DNA of 63,744 bases, the filler included, from Octopus bimaculoides (taxonomy: Eukaryota), in NCBI RefSeq assembly GCF_001194135.2. It is 11 parts of 10 records of this genome, joined end to end, with 100 filler letters (N's around TTAATTAATTAA, not from the genome) between each part and the next. Parts side by side here need not be neighbours in the genome. Positions count along the whole stretch, not along the records: positions 1 to 2,713 come from NC_068988.1; 10 more parts are not named here. One strand, 5' to 3'. Positions within the stretch are counted from its first letter, which is position 1, and each line of letters starts with the position of its first letter. Shown here piece by piece: positions 1 through 63,246 of the stretch. The translations under genes were made by a program, and so were the position numbers. Below the pieces are notes generated by a model, which saw only the letters and a program-made list of their open reading frames with translations, made no database searches and had not been told where the DNA came from.

Positions 1-235
1 TATATATATATATATATATATGTAAAATAACAATAATAGTAACGATGCGAAGGAAACAGGCCCAAATTATGGGCTAAGAGCTCTGCAGTCTTGGTTGCCA
101 AACTTAGCACGAATGGTGTCTCGATAAATAGACCGGCTGGTGGCTAACATTAAAATAAAAATCTCAATATTGGGTAAATGCGTCTAAAAATTGTATCAAA
201 TAATGGTATTAATAAGTCTATAGCCAAATGAGAAA

Positions 236-337
236 ACCTTTCGCCGCCCGAGCGCACCCCTGGATGCCTCGGGTATGTGCCATGCTTTGTTGTGGTGCTC
301 TTATAGTTATGGTATTGAAATTGTTTTACGTAGGATT
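236..337 (-). mobile_element. R4/Dong-clade LINE, extreme 3' remnant (last codons plus 3'UTR)
   Basis: Minus strand reads ATC CTA CGT AAA ACA ATT TCA ATA CCA TAA (ILRKTISIP*), then ataagagcaccacaacaaagcatggcacatacccgagg. This is homologous to the Dong 3' end at 47366-47596 and abuts taat repeats. Confidence 0.7.
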
Positions 338-454
338 ATTATTATAATTGTTGCTGTTATTGTTGTTGTTGTTTCAGTTTTCTTGTTCTTATTATTTCTA
401 ATTAGTAGAATAACTAGGTGGACGTTGAAGAGGAGAAGGAGGCGGACGTGGTGA

Positions 455-612
455 GGGAACAAAAGAAAGAAACAAATGAAAAGAGAAGGAATAAGAAAGA
501 AAGAAGAAAGAAGAACAGAGAAGAAATAGGAAAGAAAGAAAGAAAGAAAGAAAGAAAGAAATAAAGAAAGGAGGACAGAAAGAACGAAACAAAGAAAGAA
601 AGAAAGGAAAAT
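455..612. repeat. (GAAA)n / purine-rich microsatellite
   Basis: Degenerate aaag/gaaa runs; explains ORFs 398..592 and 414..632. Confidence 0.9.
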
Positions 613-1173
613 TTTAGGAAATGCAAAAACATCAGGAGAGCATTATTAAATAAAAAATGAAGTCTTCCAAAATTTCTGTTTCAGAGATCCGATATTGTGA
701 TTGAAATTATTAGAATGTCGTTCCATTCTCTCCTAGAAATAAAGCCATTACTGAGACTGGACAATAGCAAATGTATGTAAATAGTTTTCGAACTCCTCAC
801 ACAAGTCTTCTGCACTTCTTGGAGAAAATAGAATTTGCGTGGCGTCCCTAACACGTTTAACAAAGTATTGTCGCAAAGTCCCAGGACAAAAAGAGAGAAG
901 AAGTGAACGAATGCGGAAATGAGATAAAAAATAGGATGGCGGTAGAAATAATTGTCATAATGATAGAGATCGAAGACTTTCGTCCATTATTTCACCTCTA
1001 TCTCATGTTCACCTTTGGCAATGAAAAGACGCAAGAAGGATGTCGGAAGATAAGATGTCACATAAATTTAAAACACCAATGAAATTGAGATAACATATTC
1101 GACATCTTTTATGATGTAATATCTAAAATAGAATTGACGAAAAAGTACGATTATATATTATTATATAACTTAC

Positions 1174-2124
1174 CGATTTATTTAAACGAACTCCAATCCA
1201 CATCGTCCTGATCAAAAGCATCACGTTCAACAAAGCCACAAAGGTAAGGGAAGTGTATTCAAACAATATATATTGAAATGAACTTTTTATAATTATATAA
1301 GTAGCAACACAACATCCAACAATATTAAAGATTACGATAAATCCCGAAGACGACTGAAATGATTCATTTACTAAATTAAGTGTTTTACTCAGAGTATCAT
1401 GTGAGTTACATATTTCTGGGATCTCTTTATATTTCTTGAAGAAATACGAAGTATTAGATTGCTTTCCTTTAAGCCATCTCTCAGCCTCGCTCGCTACTTT
1501 GTTAAACTCATAGAGGAGTGTAGTCGCAATTGCCATATTGATATACCAATCAAGTAGCATGTACATATGTGATATACAATCAAATGCAATGAGAATTAAT
1601 GAAATAATTAAGTCAAGAGTTTTGCTGAAATCTAAATAATTTGTTGGGGGATACCAAACAGAGTACATGAAAAACGGGACAACGTAATAGAAAATATTAA
1701 CCATAATAGGCGGCAGCAATATAACTATAAAAAGTGATATTAATGAAAATACTAAGTTATTGTTATAGAATTTTTCATCAACTTCTTCAATTGTAAGTTC
1801 GGCGAATGCTTCGAGTATTTCTTTCACTTTAGATTTTCTGAAGAATTTGATCAGACAATAGAGTGAAATGATACACCGAAAAAATACTGCACAAATATAT
1901 ACATATATTTCATGAGTTTTGAATATATTCGCTGCTATTAGATCGTAAGTATATATAATGGGACTTGTAATCAGATATACCAAATACAGGATATAAAAGG
2001 CAGAGATACAGATAGTTTTACATTTGAGAGACTTCAGTGATATGTTCATAAGTGATATCTTAGACATATTAATTTTTCCATAAAATTGTAATATGTTATA
2101 GAATCGTGTTTCTTTTAGTTCCAT
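1174..2124 (-). CDS. Large coding exon (317 codons) of a putative gustatory-receptor-like (GRL, 7TM chemoreceptor/ion-channel superfamily) protein, TM1-TM6; 3' exon(s) not identified
   Basis: Stop-free 1-kb frame in very AT-rich DNA. First ATG at 2124 with an in-frame TAA upstream at 2155-2157. Six hydrophobic segments; LLYEFNKV after TM4; long loop ending HDTLSKTLNLVNESF before TM5; TM6 ending WIGVRLNKS; then the phase-0 donor TCG|GTAAGT (exon ends 1174). Confidence that it is a real coding exon is higher than confidence in the family. Confidence 0.75.
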
Positions 2125-2757
2125 ACGTTTTTGTAATAAAATATTTCTCACAAGTTACTTCTATATAAAGAGTTAAACTCGTTGACCTAAAACACAGAGG
2201 CCTTATTTCTGTTTAAGATATCTAATTCTTCAATTTTGCTTCTATAATAAGTTCAGTGTTGCAAAGTTCCGTGTGTTAAGAAAGAACAGGAATTAAAGAA
2301 GATATTGGATAAAGCTGTTATATAAAGTATCCCGTTTTGTTTGGATGTAGGGATTATTTCAAATCTGTTGCTATGGATTTAAGATATATATCAAATTAAA
2401 TATTGCTCGCTAAGCTTCTTAAAACATAAATCTCAGATCTTTTATATTCAATCAGCAATATATATATATATATATATATATATGAATTTATGTGTGATAT
2501 CACTCTGATGTTCATTTGATTTTCGCAAGTATATTGATTACAATATCGATATCATATTCTTCTCCATTAGTTTGCATTGTATGAAACGTTGGTTCCAAAT
2601 GGATGGGCATTGAGTAATTCTTTTATCTGTCACATATAAAAAGATTTGTCTTATATATAAGATTTCTCTTATATATGAAATTTCACTTCAAAATAAGTGT
2701 GTATGTGCATATANNNNNNNNNNNNNNNNNNNNNNNNNNNNNNNNNNNNNNNNNNNN

Positions 2758-29160: not shown

Positions 29161-29578
29161 TAGGAGTAGGAGTGGCTGTGTGGTAAGTAACTTACTAACG
29201 AACCACATGGTTCCGGGTTCAGTCCCACTGCGTGGCACCTTGGGAAAATGTCTTCTACTATAGCCTCAGGCCGATCAAAGTCTTGTGAGTGGATTTGGTA
29301 GACGGAAACTGAAAGAAGCCCGTCGTATATATGTATAGGCATATATGTATGTATATGTGTGTATATGTTTTTGTGTTTGTGTTTGCTCCCCCAACATCGT
29401 TTGACGACCGATGCTAGTGTGCTAATGTCACCGTAACTTAGCGGTTCGGCAAAACAGACCGATAGAATAAGTACTAGGCTTACAAAGAATAAGTCCTGAG
29501 GTCGATTTGCTCGACTAAAGGCGGTGCTCCAGCATGGCCACTGTCAAATGACTGAAACATGTAAAAGAGTAAAAGAGA
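29161..29578 (+). mobile_element. SINE family A, full length
   Basis: tRNA-like head (gggttcagtccc), CORE-like accttgggaaaatgtctt, internal TA/TG microsatellite, 3' tail gtaaaagagtaaaaga. Confidence 0.9.
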
Positions 29579-31789
29579 TATCTATCTCACCGACCATCGT
29601 CTCCGAATTTTTGGTTCTCTCTAATTTTTCACTCTACATTTTCTTGTTCCATATAATATTTCAACTATTCCCTACCCAACCTATTATGTCATTCCCGTTC
29701 TTACTTTTAAACTTTCTCTCTGTTACCTATTTTCTTACTCTGACTCCCTCTCCTTGTATTGTGACGTTCTTTGTAATTATATATTTTCAGTACATTCAAC
29801 CGACAGATGAATATTATTTTCTTCCAATATTTCCTTCCAGTATTTGTGTAGGCGACACTATAATTTAGATTAGTTTTATTTCATACATATTCGCTTACAC
29901 GAATTTATTTTATATATATGTAATGCACAATGAGAAACAACCGTAAATTATTGTTTGGATTCTTTTTTCTTTTATCTGTAATGTCAGAGTATGTGTTCTC
30001 CAGAGAGCTACCTATCTTTGAAGAAATACTATGAAGGATTACCACGAATTTTCCTCTTTCTTAGGAATATTCGAGAATAAGATTTTCGGATATATATACC
30101 AATTTTTGAAGAATTACGATACACTTTCGTTTTCCTGCTGTTATCAGTTCTCGTGCTTTCTGGTTAAATTATATTTATCCTCAATTCTCTGTAACTATTT
30201 TATGAACGCTTTCACGCCATTAACAATCGCCTGTCCATCTTTTAATTTACTACACTTTCAATAGCTCAAATAACATATGGTGCTTGCTAGATTCCGTCGT
30301 CTATAGTTTGATGTTGGATCTTATGTATTACATTCCGTCTGAGAACTAATATTTGTCTATGCAGCATACTCTTTTGACGTACAATTATGCAGTATATGCA
30401 CATAGGAAATACTTATATAATTTTCTGATCTGGTGATGTTCGTATTCTGAAAATAAGAAATAATACAATGTTAATAGTATAATAGTACATAGACGTTTAC
30501 TTTATTTAATGACCTGGTCAGAGTAGATTAGTCTAGCTTCACATGTTAAATATTTAACCGATTGATTAACAATAAGAGGTTATATATTGAATTACTACGT
30601 GTATTTGTAATTATTGGTGTAATGACCCTCCCAAGACACAACAAATTTCATAAATGAAGAAATCATGAATTACGGTGGAATAAATCTATATACAGTGGTT
30701 ATAAAAATGGAAGCGACGGAATGAGTGAAGAAAGAAGGAACCGCGGCGATAAATAGACATGAAGAATGCAAGAGTGAACAATTAAGTGGAGTCGGACGGA
30801 AAAAAGTAGGAGAATCGTGCAGTTTGCGTAGCACGGAACAAGGAAAGAGAGAGCCATTACTGACATTGATGGACATGAAGATATAGCGGACAGGAGATGT
30901 ATTATGGCTAAAGGAGGATTCAAAATGAGACATAATGGTTACATTTTGACCGTGTGTGAGTGTATATCACAGTTCCAAAGTTCATTCAACTGCTTAATCA
31001 TTTGATAAAGCGAAAGAGAATATAACAAGGGGTAACTGTATGTTGGGATTTTGTAAACTTGTGCTCCGTTGAGACGGTTCCAAATATTATTTCCGAAATT
31101 TCTTCAATGCCTTGATAGCTGAGTGCATAACGCTAATTTGTAATTTGGAAGTTCAAGTATAATTAGTATGGTGTCCATAACACTTCAGCTGTAGTTTGAC
31201 TAAGTTCAAATTGTTTCAATTTGGCCAATGAGATAAACCTTGTCCTTTATGATGTAACCTATATTAATAGAGATTTATTTATAAGGCCCTACCATCCCTA
31301 TCAACCCGAAGACCTTCAGTTTTGCTTGATCTATTCTTGCAGAGCGTTCAAATTAAAACATCTACTTAAAAGAAAAAAACATGTCATAATGCTTCGTTAT
31401 TCCTTTTGTATCAAACTCATACAGTATTGTGTGTAGTTCTTTGGAACCCTGCACTTTATTCTATAAATGATTCATATGTGATTTATGAAAGCAGATTTCT
31501 TTCCAAATGTACATACTGAAATTCAAATTAATTTTTTATATGATTCTTAGCATTCCCCAAACATTGCTTCGCATTTCGATGTTGGCATTTCATAAGTTAC
31601 TCTGCGATTATTCTGCAAAGTGAGTGAATTCAGCAAAGGCCTTATTTGTATAGTCTTATATAAAGTAGATTTAACTTATTGATTTTCGAAATGAGACTTA
31701 ATTCTATAGATATGTTCCTTTTTATTTTTAGTTGTTTTGGGGTAGCAAATTCTAGTAGTTGAGGTGTAGCAACCACGATCGCGAGATCG

Positions 31790-58061: not shown

Positions 58062-58278
58062 GAAGGCAGTGAGCTTACAGAATCGTTAACATTGCTGGAC
58101 GAAATGCTTAGCAGTATTTCGCGTGTCGTAAAGTTCTGTGTTCAAATTTCACCGAGGTCGAATTTGTCGTTCATCCTTTCGGGGTCGATAAATTAAGTAC
58201 CAGTGAAACACTGGGGTCGATGTGATCGACTTATTCTCTCCTCAAAAAATGGCTGCACTTGTGGAAAAAATTGAACCA
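58060..58278 (+). mobile_element. SINE family M, near full length
   Basis: aaggcagtgagcttacagaatcgtta..gttcaaatttcaccgaggtcga..catcctttcggggtcgataaattaagtaccagtgaaacactggggtcga. Confidence 0.85.
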
Positions 58279-58294
58279 ATTATTATTATTATTA

Positions 58295-58351
<57 letters not shown>

Positions 58352-58564
58352 GGAAGCTTACAGCTTATTTTGTTGGGTATGATGTCCTTAAGACACGAGA
58401 TTGCGATTTGGCCGCTTTTTATTGCTGTTAGGTTGTTGTCTGTCGCGTCGTTGCGTTGAGCAGTCGTTTACAAGATTTTCTATGCCCACACTCACAGGAA
58501 ATGTTCCATTAACTTTCGCCATTACACCTACATTTGAAGAAGGAAAAAACAATTTTCAACAAAG

Positions 58565-58632
<68 letters not shown>

Positions 58633-59850
58633 CAGGGGTTGGACAAAATAAAGGAAACACCTTAAAATTTCAAACAAATTTATTTTAATATGGGGTAGGA
58701 CAGCTTTGGCAGTAATTACAGCTTGAATTCTTTGAGGTATGGATTCGTACAAAGTCTGAATTGTTTCCAAAGGAATTTTTGTCCATTCTTCAGCTAAAAC
58801 ATTCTCCAGTTCTTGTAGTGATGATGGTGGAGGATATCAACTCCTTACTTGTTTTTCTAAAATACACCATAAATATTCAATAATATTGAGATCTGGGGTC
58901 TGAGGTGGCCAGATAGGATGTTCAACTTCACTAGAATGCTACTCGTGCCATTCAGTAACAACTTTAGCTGTGTGAATTGGTGCATTATCATCCTGAAAGA
59001 TTGCGTTTTTCTCCGGAAACAATTCCGTAACCATAGGATGAATTTGATCAGATAAAATGCTTAAATAGTCCTGACTATTAATTCTGCCATGAAGGGAAAC
59101 CATTGCCCGGCGTATTTCCAAGATACAGCCAATCAGATCATCACAGATCCTCCTCCATGTTTGACAGTTAGATGAAGGCAGTCTGGGTCAAATGCTTGTT
59201 TTGGCTGTCTCCACCCGTATATCCGGCCGGTGGTCGGAAATAAGGTACAAGGTGACTCGTCCGAGAAGATAACATTCTCCACTGCTCTAGGGACCAATTC
59301 TCTAGGTTTTTACTCTACTCTAAACGCTTTGCAATATTTGTTTTTGAAAGTAGTGGTTTTTTGATTGCAGCCCTCCCGTGAAATCCGGCTTTATGCAGCT
59401 CCTGGTGAACAGTTTTTTTGGAAACTGGGTTCTCGAGGTGGTCATTAAGCTCTTCAGTAATTTTGGGAGCTGTACTTTTGTGATCCTTTCTAACAATTCG
59501 CGTAAAAGTGCGACGGCACCTATCTGAAAGTTTTGGTTTTCTTTGGGAGTTTTTTTCGATGAGGAGGTTTTTCCTTCTTTCTCGAAGGCTGTCATTACTT
59601 TTGAGAAAGTACTTCTTGATACACCAAACATTTCGGCTGTTTTCGTTATGCTAGTGCCTGCCATACGAGCACCCACAATTTGACCACTTTGAAAGTCCGA
59701 TAGGTCTGTCATTTTAATGAATTTTAATTACGTTTTTCTGATGATATCTGAAAAGAAACAGCAATTTTAGCAAAACATATTAAGCAACAATAATAATAAA
59801 TCAAAAAACATAAAAATAAACAAAGTTTTGACGGTTTTATAGATATTTCA
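58633..59850 (-). mobile_element. Tc1-family (DDE-type) DNA transposon; decayed transposase 59712->58685; one TIR retained
   Basis: MTDLSDFQSGQIVGARMAG.SITKTAEMFGVSRST.SKV; FQDDNAPIHTAK; PDLNIIE; PTPY*. TIR caggggttggacaaaata..gaaacacc preceded by TA at the end of a (TATC)n array. Confidence 0.92.

Positions 59851-63201: not shown

Positions 63202-63246
<45 letters not shown>

Follow-up and report, generated by a model that had tools for sequence, protein, structure and literature searches.

A probable variable first exon of a gustatory-receptor-like gene in Octopus bimaculoides

What kind of protein is encoded by an octopus open reading frame that has six hydrophobic segments and runs up to a splice donor, and is it a gene in itself? 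We studied such a frame in a 2,713-nucleotide (nt) piece of the Octopus bimaculoides genome (positions 1-2713, hereafter the window), which is AT-rich (69% A+T). An earlier note, made from the sequence alone, had interpreted the frame as a divergent gene for a gustatory-receptor-like (GRL) protein, that is, a relative of the gustatory receptors (GRs) and the odorant receptors (ORs) of insects in the seven-transmembrane ion channel (7TMIC) superfamily. Our profile, hhalign, and AlphaFold/Foldseek tests agree with that interpretation, and we consider it very likely that the frame is the large variable first coding exon of an octopus GRL gene. The single-gene view needs to be amended: a GRL gene it appears to be, but not a lone find, as it represents one cassette type of tandem arrays of alternative first exons.

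The reading frame and its homology to gustatory receptors

The stop-free frame is on the minus strand and spans 2151 to 1123, or 342 codons counted from a GTG. The longest run without a stop codon in the window spans 343 codons, while 2000 shuffles of the window gave a mean of 84 and a maximum of 199, so the open frame is far beyond chance. An ATG at 2124..2122 (MELKETRF) lines up with the first residue of all of the octopus paralogs described below, and the 39 bases that precede it are conserved among the copies in O. vulgaris. Together with a splice donor immediately after 1174, this delimits a coding exon of 317 codons (2124..1174; Table 1). The span of 1174-2160 in the earlier note was right at its lower bound and extended about 36 nt too far at the other end. 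The phase-0 GTAAGT donor that it described after a GxRLN motif is indeed there (1173..1168, minus strand). Three intact O. vulgaris paralogs retain the junction AAATCG/GTAAGTTATATAAT, and a fourth copy, which has an in-frame stop, reads AAATCG/GTAAGTAATATAAT. Also, the O. sinensis cassette for the protein P0001, which RefSeq isoforms show as spliced, ends RLNRS/GTAAGT, with the donor at the identical position.

The closest proteins are all from octopuses: LOC118764608 and LOC118764607 of O. sinensis and LOC106880719 of O. bimaculoides are 35-40% identical to the window exon, and in an alignment of the octopus paralogs the range is 35-52%. LOC118764608 isoform X1 (P0001) is 40% identical; P0005, P0007, and P0012 are isoforms of LOC118764607, and P0004 is LOC106880719. 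As the earlier note had guessed, these RefSeq proteins are named "uncharacterized protein LOC...". Further relatives are mechanical open-reading-frame calls on short public contigs. The window's own open reading frame had no exact match in the protein collection. The RefSeq paralogs have near-identical C-termini (…EVVAKILVFLNRLTTESHGIDVGGCFVITPSSTLTMIGSFITYILVVIQTK[SP]L), but their first ~318 residues are only 40-60% identical.

When we compared a profile of seven family members to 1.84 billion representative proteins, there were only 31 matches at E ≤ 0.001. According to their sources, the distant matches are from Lottia, Haliotis, Littorina, Sepia, and octopus. They include V4C6X0 and V4AUT3 of Lottia gigantea, which are "Gustatory receptor" entries; Haliotis proteins with the NCBI names "gustatory receptor for sugar taste 64a-like" and "61a-like"; LOC118764606 of O. 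sinensis; and A0A0L8FL56 of O. bimaculoides, which is a "Gustatory receptor" in UniProt. Eight of the 10 distant matches that we scanned pass the cut-off of Pfam 7tm_7 (PF08395). Within the family itself, P0007 reaches 30.3 bits against a cut-off of 26.6, with the match lying in its first-exon part; P0004 is under the cut-off at 25.1 bits, and P0001, P0005, and P0006 have no match. We view the gathering score of 7tm_7 as an aid to detection and not as a defining property of the GR/GRL superfamily, and the window contains no exons for the seventh transmembrane (TM) helix.

Because the signal from the family profile could stem from shared TM7 exons, which lie outside of the window, we repeated the homology tests without those exons. 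With hhalign, the alignment of the family's first exons matched molluscan GRLs with 96.4% probability and E = 1.5e-9 (96-97% across runs), and the matching region comprises the end of TM4, the long loop, TM5, and TM6. A GRL-only profile, which we built from 7tm_7-positive GRLs and from which members of the cassette family were excluded, gives the window exon 40.6 bits (E = 2e-11 among 2002 sequences). As controls, the best of 2000 composition-matched shuffles scored 9.6 bits and the reversed sequence scored -10.4. In hhalign, the single window sequence matched the GRL-only alignment with 92.6% probability and E = 4.5e-7. By this sequence homology, which is significant at the profile level, the window exon appears to belong to the GR/GRL (7TMIC) superfamily.

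The predicted structure points in the same direction. The six hydrophobic segments that had been claimed are present by hydropathy, and the helices of the AlphaFold model agree with them (Table 1); the model has an extra N-terminal helix at residues 7-26. All three motifs quoted in the earlier note were found, namely LLYEFNKV (residues 202-209), HxxLxxxLxxVNxxF (as SHDTLSKTLNLVNESF, residues 241-256), and GxRLN (in the terminal GVRLNKS), and they fall on columns that are invariant, or nearly so, when the octopus family is aligned. Lysines and arginines are distributed one-sidedly, with 22 in the N-terminus, the TM2-3 loop, the TM4-5 loop, and the tail after TM6 versus 3 in the other three loops, which predicts that the N-terminus is inside the cell. 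This is the inverted topology that the earlier note had anticipated. The TM4-5 loop has 8 of these residues, consistent with a cytoplasmic location. An intracellular N-terminus is the topology that characterizes GRLs (PMC7746228).

AlphaFold modeled the window exon with a predicted local distance difference test score (pLDDT) of 82.4 and a predicted template-modeling score (pTM) of 0.82. For the full-length paralog P0004, AlphaFold2 with a 29-sequence alignment gave a pLDDT of 80.4 and a pTM of 0.76, with a pLDDT of 34-60 in the TM7 part. In Foldseek searches of PDB, the 16 best matches of P0004 are all insect ORs or GRs (probability 0.97-1.00, query-normalized TM-score 0.35-0.60), including AgamOR28, ApOR5-Orco, MhOR5, AaegOR10, DmGr64a, BmGr9, and Gr43a, and the seventeenth falls to a probability of 0.18 and a TM-score of 0.11. 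For the window exon, the nine best matches are all insect ORs or Orco, with TM-scores of 0.47-0.65, versus ~0.14-0.27 for chains of ATP-binding cassette (ABC) transporters and G protein-coupled receptors (GPCRs). The earlier note had left room for a GPCR, a transporter, or a transposon protein, and the predicted structure resembles insect OR/Orco/GR proteins instead. A GPCR identity in particular was rejected, as GPCR structures reach TM-scores of only ~0.13-0.17 across both models and the charge bias puts the N-terminus inside rather than outside. In other words, the models support an OR/GR fold for the window exon.

The octopus models begin with an N-terminal helix (S0), and their TM4 and TM5 helices are long enough to extend into the cytoplasm. 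Insect OR/GR structures share these features, and the insect ORs, Orco, and GRs (Orco 6c70, MhOR5 7lic, AgamOR28 8v3d, BmGr9 8vc2, DmGr43a 8jm9, and DmGr64a 8ze0) are the sole folds in PDB that score comparably. On the other hand, the sequence identity is only ~11-14%, and TM-scores of 0.35-0.65 are short of near-identity.

Cassette arrays and shared TM7 exons

The window exon has six helices, and we observed the seventh solely in the shared exons of the paralogs. At the P0001 locus of O. sinensis (L001; CM016866.1, 59.6 kb), cassettes of ~955 nt begin at 1457, 6109 (partial), 10001, 16398, 27567, and 42321, all on the same strand, and another begins at 59371, past three small constant exons (Table 1). 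Each constant exon has an AG acceptor, the first two end at a GTAAAT donor, and all of the junctions are in phase 0. Splicing in O. sinensis is known only from the RefSeq isoform models, in which X1-X4 of LOC118764607 and LOC118764608 have near-identical C-termini. In the O. sinensis paralogs, the C-terminal region is interrupted by three phase-0 introns, and the last of these is directly ahead of an exon that starts with MIGSFITY.

Do these shared exons look like the end of a GRL? Hallmarks of animal GRLs are 3' introns and the TM7 motif (T/S)Yhhhhh(Q/K/E)(F/L/M) (PMC7746228). The paralogs have TYILVVIQT, which fits three of the four motif positions; canonical octopus GRLs have TYVIVVLQT, and those of Lottia and Haliotis have TY.....QF. 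A C-terminal block of the shared exons (RLT...G......F.I......L...G...TY..V..Q) aligns well with the Lottia and Haliotis GRLs. The window's donor is in phase 0 right after TM6, and, compared by phase and region, it fits with the phase-0 introns toward the 3' end in GRL genes. The earlier note had expected late exons with TM7 and a TYxxxxxQF-like motif. In the annotated paralogs, those exons and their phase-0 introns exist, but the motif ends with T rather than F. We think it probable, by analogy with these paralogs, that the window exon is spliced to shared TM7 exons as well.

Other GRL genes of octopuses gave us several further observations. LOC118764606, which is ~250 kb from L001 on the same chromosome and is 7tm_7-positive, has one large and three small exons. 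Its locus (L003; CM016866.1:83050339-83098122, reversed) contains a second, apparently unannotated cassette at 23267-24277 (43% identity), which sits between the annotated first exon and the three small exons. So, alternative first exons are not confined to the divergent clade. The first shared exon of L001 has an internal AG (…CAGTTTCAG/G) that is a possible alternative acceptor. The shorter first shared exon in LOC118764607 X2/X4 and in P0004 would drop VHSITxSIHYMQFQ; canonical octopus GRLs have IHDIVEDLYAMNFK in alignment with this segment, so the short forms could be either artefacts of prediction or real variants. Finally, P0049 (O. bimaculoides LOC106880487) and P0023 are a distinct type of GRL with their own variant of the C-terminal exon (…GSIITYSIVAYQTRS), so octopuses have at least three lineages of GRLs.

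Close copies of the window cassette are found in O. vulgaris. A 68-kb region that encodes a faulty gene model, P0003 (L002; OX597821.1:107184675-107253054), contains three units of the window's type on one strand. These units (29478-31658, 43988-46050, and 62702-64520) are 1.9-2.2 kb long with 78-79% nucleotide identity, and each spans the exon and some of the flank on either side, inside the range 530-2713 of the window. Shorter stretches of L002 match the window at 69-84% identity. The three matching cassettes are intact (939-951 nt, 66% amino-acid identity), and a fourth copy, which is less similar (47% identity), is interrupted by one in-frame stop. Altogether, L002 has at least five full-length cassettes, one of them with an in-frame stop, and four partial ones. 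Clusters of paralogs in cephalopods, which the earlier note had raised, are present as tandem cassette arrays in both O. sinensis and O. vulgaris. In a megablast comparison, L001 and L002 share only scattered repeats (77-90% identity), so they are different regions.

The dead or partial cassettes of L002 are at 19978-20931, ~39538-39967, 46449-47054, ~58077-58819, and 67607-67717 (one with the in-frame stop and four truncated), which suggests birth-and-death turnover inside the array. Two faulty O. vulgaris models cover cassettes. CAI9727304.1 (P0003) is a chimera: a foreign N-terminal segment of 150 residues, which we take to be transposon-like, is joined to the middle of one cassette and to the 5' flank and N-terminus of the next. 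CAI9727303.1 (P0029) is a fragment, with 79 residues from the cassette at 63234. The exon is not duplicated by itself: the unit also takes in ~0.6 kb of the upstream flank and no less than 0.64 kb of the intron (window 530-1173). As window positions 1-216 also match two sites in L002 at 83-84% identity, the unit may exceed the length of the window.

The co-duplicated upstream flank is a candidate for a cassette-specific promoter. It has a TATATAG at 2167-2161 on the minus strand, 37-43 nt ahead of the ATG. Simple repeats surround the exon: (TA)n at 1-20 and ~36 copies of (AAAG)n at 462-606 in the intron, and, upstream of the exon, (AT)13 at 2458-2483 and 2.7 copies of an 18-bp unit at 2641-2688. 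An Rfam scan of the window found no match.

Table 1. Features of the window and, in the last three rows, constant exons of the O. sinensis locus L001 (in coordinates of that locus).
Feature	Position	Strand	Details
Large variable first coding exon	1174..2124	-	317 codons, ATG (2124-2122) to Ser317; N-terminal helix S0 and TM1-TM6 of a probable GRL (7TMIC) subunit
Phase-0 splice donor GTAAGT	1168..1173	-	Abuts the last codon, TCG (Ser317, 1176..1174)
First part of the intron after the exon	1..1167	-	Holds an (AAAG)n microsatellite; no TM7-type exon
Upstream flank, co-duplicated with the exon	2125..2702	-	Candidate cassette-specific promoter or 5' untranslated region; 81-84% nucleotide identity to flanks of O. 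vulgaris copies
TM1, residues 37-58	1951..2016	-	Hydropathy and charge count; AlphaFold helix 35-64
TM2, residues 73-93	1846..1908	-	Hydropathy and charge count; AlphaFold helix 70-95
TM3, residues 123-152	1669..1758	-	Hydropathy and charge count; AlphaFold helix 128-152
TM4, residues 169-192	1549..1620	-	Hydropathy and charge count; AlphaFold helix 168-220, cytoplasmic extension to ~220
Long cytoplasmic TM4-TM5 loop (predicted), residues 193-257	1354..1548	-	Most conserved family motifs: DWY, YEFNKV, EICNSHDTLSKTLNLVNESF
TM5, residues 258-279	1288..1353	-	Hydropathy and charge count; AlphaFold helix 234-279
TM6, residues 289-311, then VRLNKS	1192..1260	-	Hydropathy and charge count; AlphaFold helix 287-316
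Most variable stretch, residues 141-180	1585..1704	-	Outer end of TM3, predicted extracellular loop, outer end of TM4; identity 0.13-0.38
Lesser variable stretch, residues 61-80	1885-1944	-	Identity 0.33
Lesser variable stretch, residues 281-300	1225-1284	-	Identity 0.48
L001 constant exon 1	~46673-46741		23 codons, TM6-TM7 segment; VHSITQSIHYMQFQGVDQEVVAK
L001 constant exon 2	ends 47741		30 codons, TM6-TM7 segment; ILVFLNRLTTESHGIDVGGCFVITPSSTLT
L001 constant exon 3	ends 49589		18 codons, end of TM7, TYILVVIQT; MIGSFITYILVVIQTKPL and stop

Divergence and other explanations

If the window exon is a GRL cassette, where has it diverged? We compared its amino acid sequence to those of the three closest O. 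vulgaris copies in blocks of 20 residues. The variable stretches (Table 1) are all in predicted extracellular halves, while the predicted cytoplasmic parts (the N-terminus, the TM2-3 loop, and most of the TM4-5 loop) are 0.77-0.90 identical; the remaining blocks are 0.63-0.90 identical. In insect ORs and GRs, the ligand pocket is in the extracellular half of the helix bundle. The location of the divergence would therefore fit with diversifying or relaxed selection on ligand contacts within a constrained scaffold, and by analogy with the insect receptors we infer that the variable stretches may line a ligand pocket.

Several results weigh against our reading of the exon as part of a working GRL gene. 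A Pfam scan of the window exon had no match even at E ≤ 10, so of the connection to 7tm_7 that the earlier note had in mind, the direct match failed and the profile-level link to 7tm_7 proteins, which is significant, held up. Sequence searches of PDB with the exon, and also with the family profile, found no match either. A hidden Markov model (HMM) of the first exon alone aligns co-linearly with distant GRLs at only 22-28 bits, or E ~0.1-7 at whole-library scale, and Foldseek gave modest E-values (3e-4 with the full-length paralog, 5e-3 with the window exon). The TM7 motif of the paralogs ends in T instead of F/L/M. No TM7-type exon was found in window positions 1-1173, either by tblastn with the paralogs' C-termini or with an HMM of GRL C-termini (≤ 0.4 bits), and none was found in the 68 kb of L002, the home of the closest copies. 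Since cassettes are 5-15 kb apart, missing constant exons are expected in a 2.7-kb window. (We considered two minus-strand open reading frames, 681-863 and 748-876, one of which ends with TFAIVQSQ, as hidden TM7 exons and rejected them: they are non-hydrophobic and are not scored by the HMM.) Finally, relative to the three closest O. vulgaris copies, the exon has dS (synonymous divergence) of 0.24-0.27 and a ratio of nonsynonymous to synonymous divergence (dN/dS) of 0.77-0.91, and its nucleotide identity of 0.81 does not exceed the 0.77-0.84 seen in the flanks, which is compatible with weak constraint.

Could the exon be a decaying cassette, that is, a recently duplicated and unused GRL first exon that has yet to acquire a stop codon? 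These dN/dS values and the equal identity of exon and flanks are what make us consider it. Also, the arrays do hold dead copies (the O. vulgaris cassette with an in-frame stop and the four truncated ones), and among annotated proteins the only close relatives of the window cassette are the two faulty O. vulgaris models. But in neutral simulations with the observed divergence and substitution spectrum, the frame acquired a mean of 8.4 stops and stayed open in just 4 of 20,000 runs. The exon has no frameshifting indels, and all of its length differences are multiples of three, despite 22-260 gap positions in the flanks. The start codon and the donor are intact and conserved, all of the family-invariant residues are kept, and the clustering of substitutions in the predicted extracellular halves, with cytoplasmic parts that are 0.77-0.90 identical, would not be expected under neutrality. 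We consider decay to be unlikely. It is far less likely, in our view, that the frame encodes a stand-alone six-helix membrane protein that is translated without splicing. The frame does continue for 16 codons past the exon to a stop at 1123 (…RLNKSVSYIIIYNRTFSSILF), and the calls on short public contigs give unspliced products for P0002, P0006, and P0008. However, those calls are purely mechanical, the read-through tails vary in length and are only partly similar (VSYTTYLYNS and VSHVVIYNRIFL, each followed by a stop) while the GTAAGT donor is conserved, and the RefSeq isoforms are spliced at exactly the donor position. Also, judging from insect ORs and GRs (PMC7746228), a subunit without TM7 would be missing the helix that lines the pore, along with some of the interface between subunits.

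Even more improbable is that the resemblance to GRLs is a matter of composition alone and that the exon encodes something else (a GPCR, a transporter domain, or a membrane protein from a transposon). An AT-rich, hydrophobic exon may inflate weak similarities, and the lack of direct Pfam or PDB matches would be consistent with this. But composition does not account for the score of the real exon (40.6 bits, versus at most 9.6 bits for the shuffles and the reversed sequence), Foldseek puts GPCRs and ABC transporters far below insect ORs and GRs (TM-scores of ~0.1-0.27), and the paralogs have the GRL TM7 motif and 3' phase-0 introns.

If the frame is a first exon of a GRL gene, as we believe, then we propose that the cassette is transcribed from its own co-duplicated upstream region and that the exon is spliced, at 1174, onto three small constant exons, as in the O. 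sinensis paralogs. Such splicing would produce a subunit of seven helices, with a pocket formed by the variable part and TM7 contributed by the constant part. Each cassette would then yield a subunit with its own pocket in the extracellular half and a common TM7. Insect GRs and ORs are tetrameric ligand-gated cation channels, and by analogy the octopus subunits may assemble in the same way. In ORCO, the subunit interface and the channel gate both include residues of the TM7 motif (PMC7746228). Whether the product is a chemosensory channel seems to us to be evenly balanced. Other roles may apply: Drosophila GR28b(D) is thermosensitive (PMC11526382), and a cnidarian GRL is reported to have a role in body patterning (Saina et al. 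2015, as cited in PMC5850775).

Relation to known receptor families

GRLs are known across the protostomes, including in molluscs (Robertson 2015, as cited in PMC7746228 and PMC5850775). The octopus cassettes resemble molluscan GRLs in their profile-level homology, number of helices (counting the TM7 of the paralogs' shared exons), predicted topology, 3' phase-0 introns, and (for the paralogs) C-terminal block. They differ in that the cassettes are only 13-18% identical to those GRLs in a multiple alignment, that the window exon and most of the octopus paralogs are under the cut-off of Pfam 7tm_7, and that the TM7 motif ends in T rather than F. Relatives that are nearer than the distant molluscan GRLs were found only in octopuses or on short public contigs.

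The arrays also resemble the alternatively spliced gustatory receptor loci of Drosophila, which are Gr39a, Gr28b, and Gr23a (PMC2204066). In L001 and L003, as in loci of the Gr39a type, tandem large 5' exons on the same strand are followed by three small constant exons, and gain, loss, and pseudogenization of exons, which have been described for Gr39a (PMC2204066), are seen in the octopus arrays too. The octopus arrays look larger, with at least 6 cassettes in 60 kb (O. sinensis) or at least 9, including partial ones, in 68 kb (O. vulgaris). For the window's own subfamily, the likeness is less complete: L002 has tandem cassettes, but constant exons were not found within its 68 kb, and the window contains a single cassette. 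The host is a mollusc, and we do not mean to imply that the layout of these arrays has a common origin with that of the fly loci.

Work on chemosensation in cephalopods centers on the chemotactile receptors, which derive from nicotinic acetylcholine receptors, and ionotropic receptors and GPCRs are also discussed. Like the GRL cassettes, the chemotactile receptors of octopus are a lineage-expanded, ionotropic-type family of candidate chemoreceptors. They show positively selected sites (PMC11526382), which the localized fast divergence of the GRL family parallels. In fold and origin the two are unrelated, as the chemotactile receptors are pentameric Cys-loop proteins rather than 7TMIC. Also, expression in suckers has been demonstrated and ligands are known for the chemotactile receptors, and neither is so for the GRL cassettes.

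Which parts of this are new? The existence of GRLs in molluscs, the fly GR loci with alternative first exons, and an O. bimaculoides GRL that is named as such in a database are already known. The divergence of the octopus clade, most of whose members are under the Pfam cut-off, the size of the cassette arrays, and their poor annotation appear to be little documented. We found no description of octopus GRL arrays in the literature that we could search, although much of the literature lies beyond that reach.

For now, the practical value of these results is for annotation. Octopus genomes hold fast-evolving GRL cassettes that Pfam 7tm_7 mostly misses, and the current annotation of O. vulgaris fragments the cassettes or fuses them into chimeras. 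What the family needs is a profile of its own and gene models that are built manually. Should the cassettes be expressed in the suckers or the olfactory organ, they would be candidates for channels of taste or smell, and, if our interpretation is true, they would be a second example, outside of insects, of receptor diversity that arises from alternative first exons. More tentatively, and with rather more doubt than confidence, we suggest that octopuses might possess a large clade of GRLs that is specific to their lineage, is for the most part unannotated, and is missed by standard domain models, with dozens of alternative first-exon cassettes in long arrays, a few sets of constant TM7 exons, and fast divergence that is focused on the extracellular pocket. 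If so, then beside the chemotactile receptors octopuses would have a second expanded repertoire of ionotropic chemoreceptors, one that arose through the choice of cassettes rather than the duplication of whole genes.

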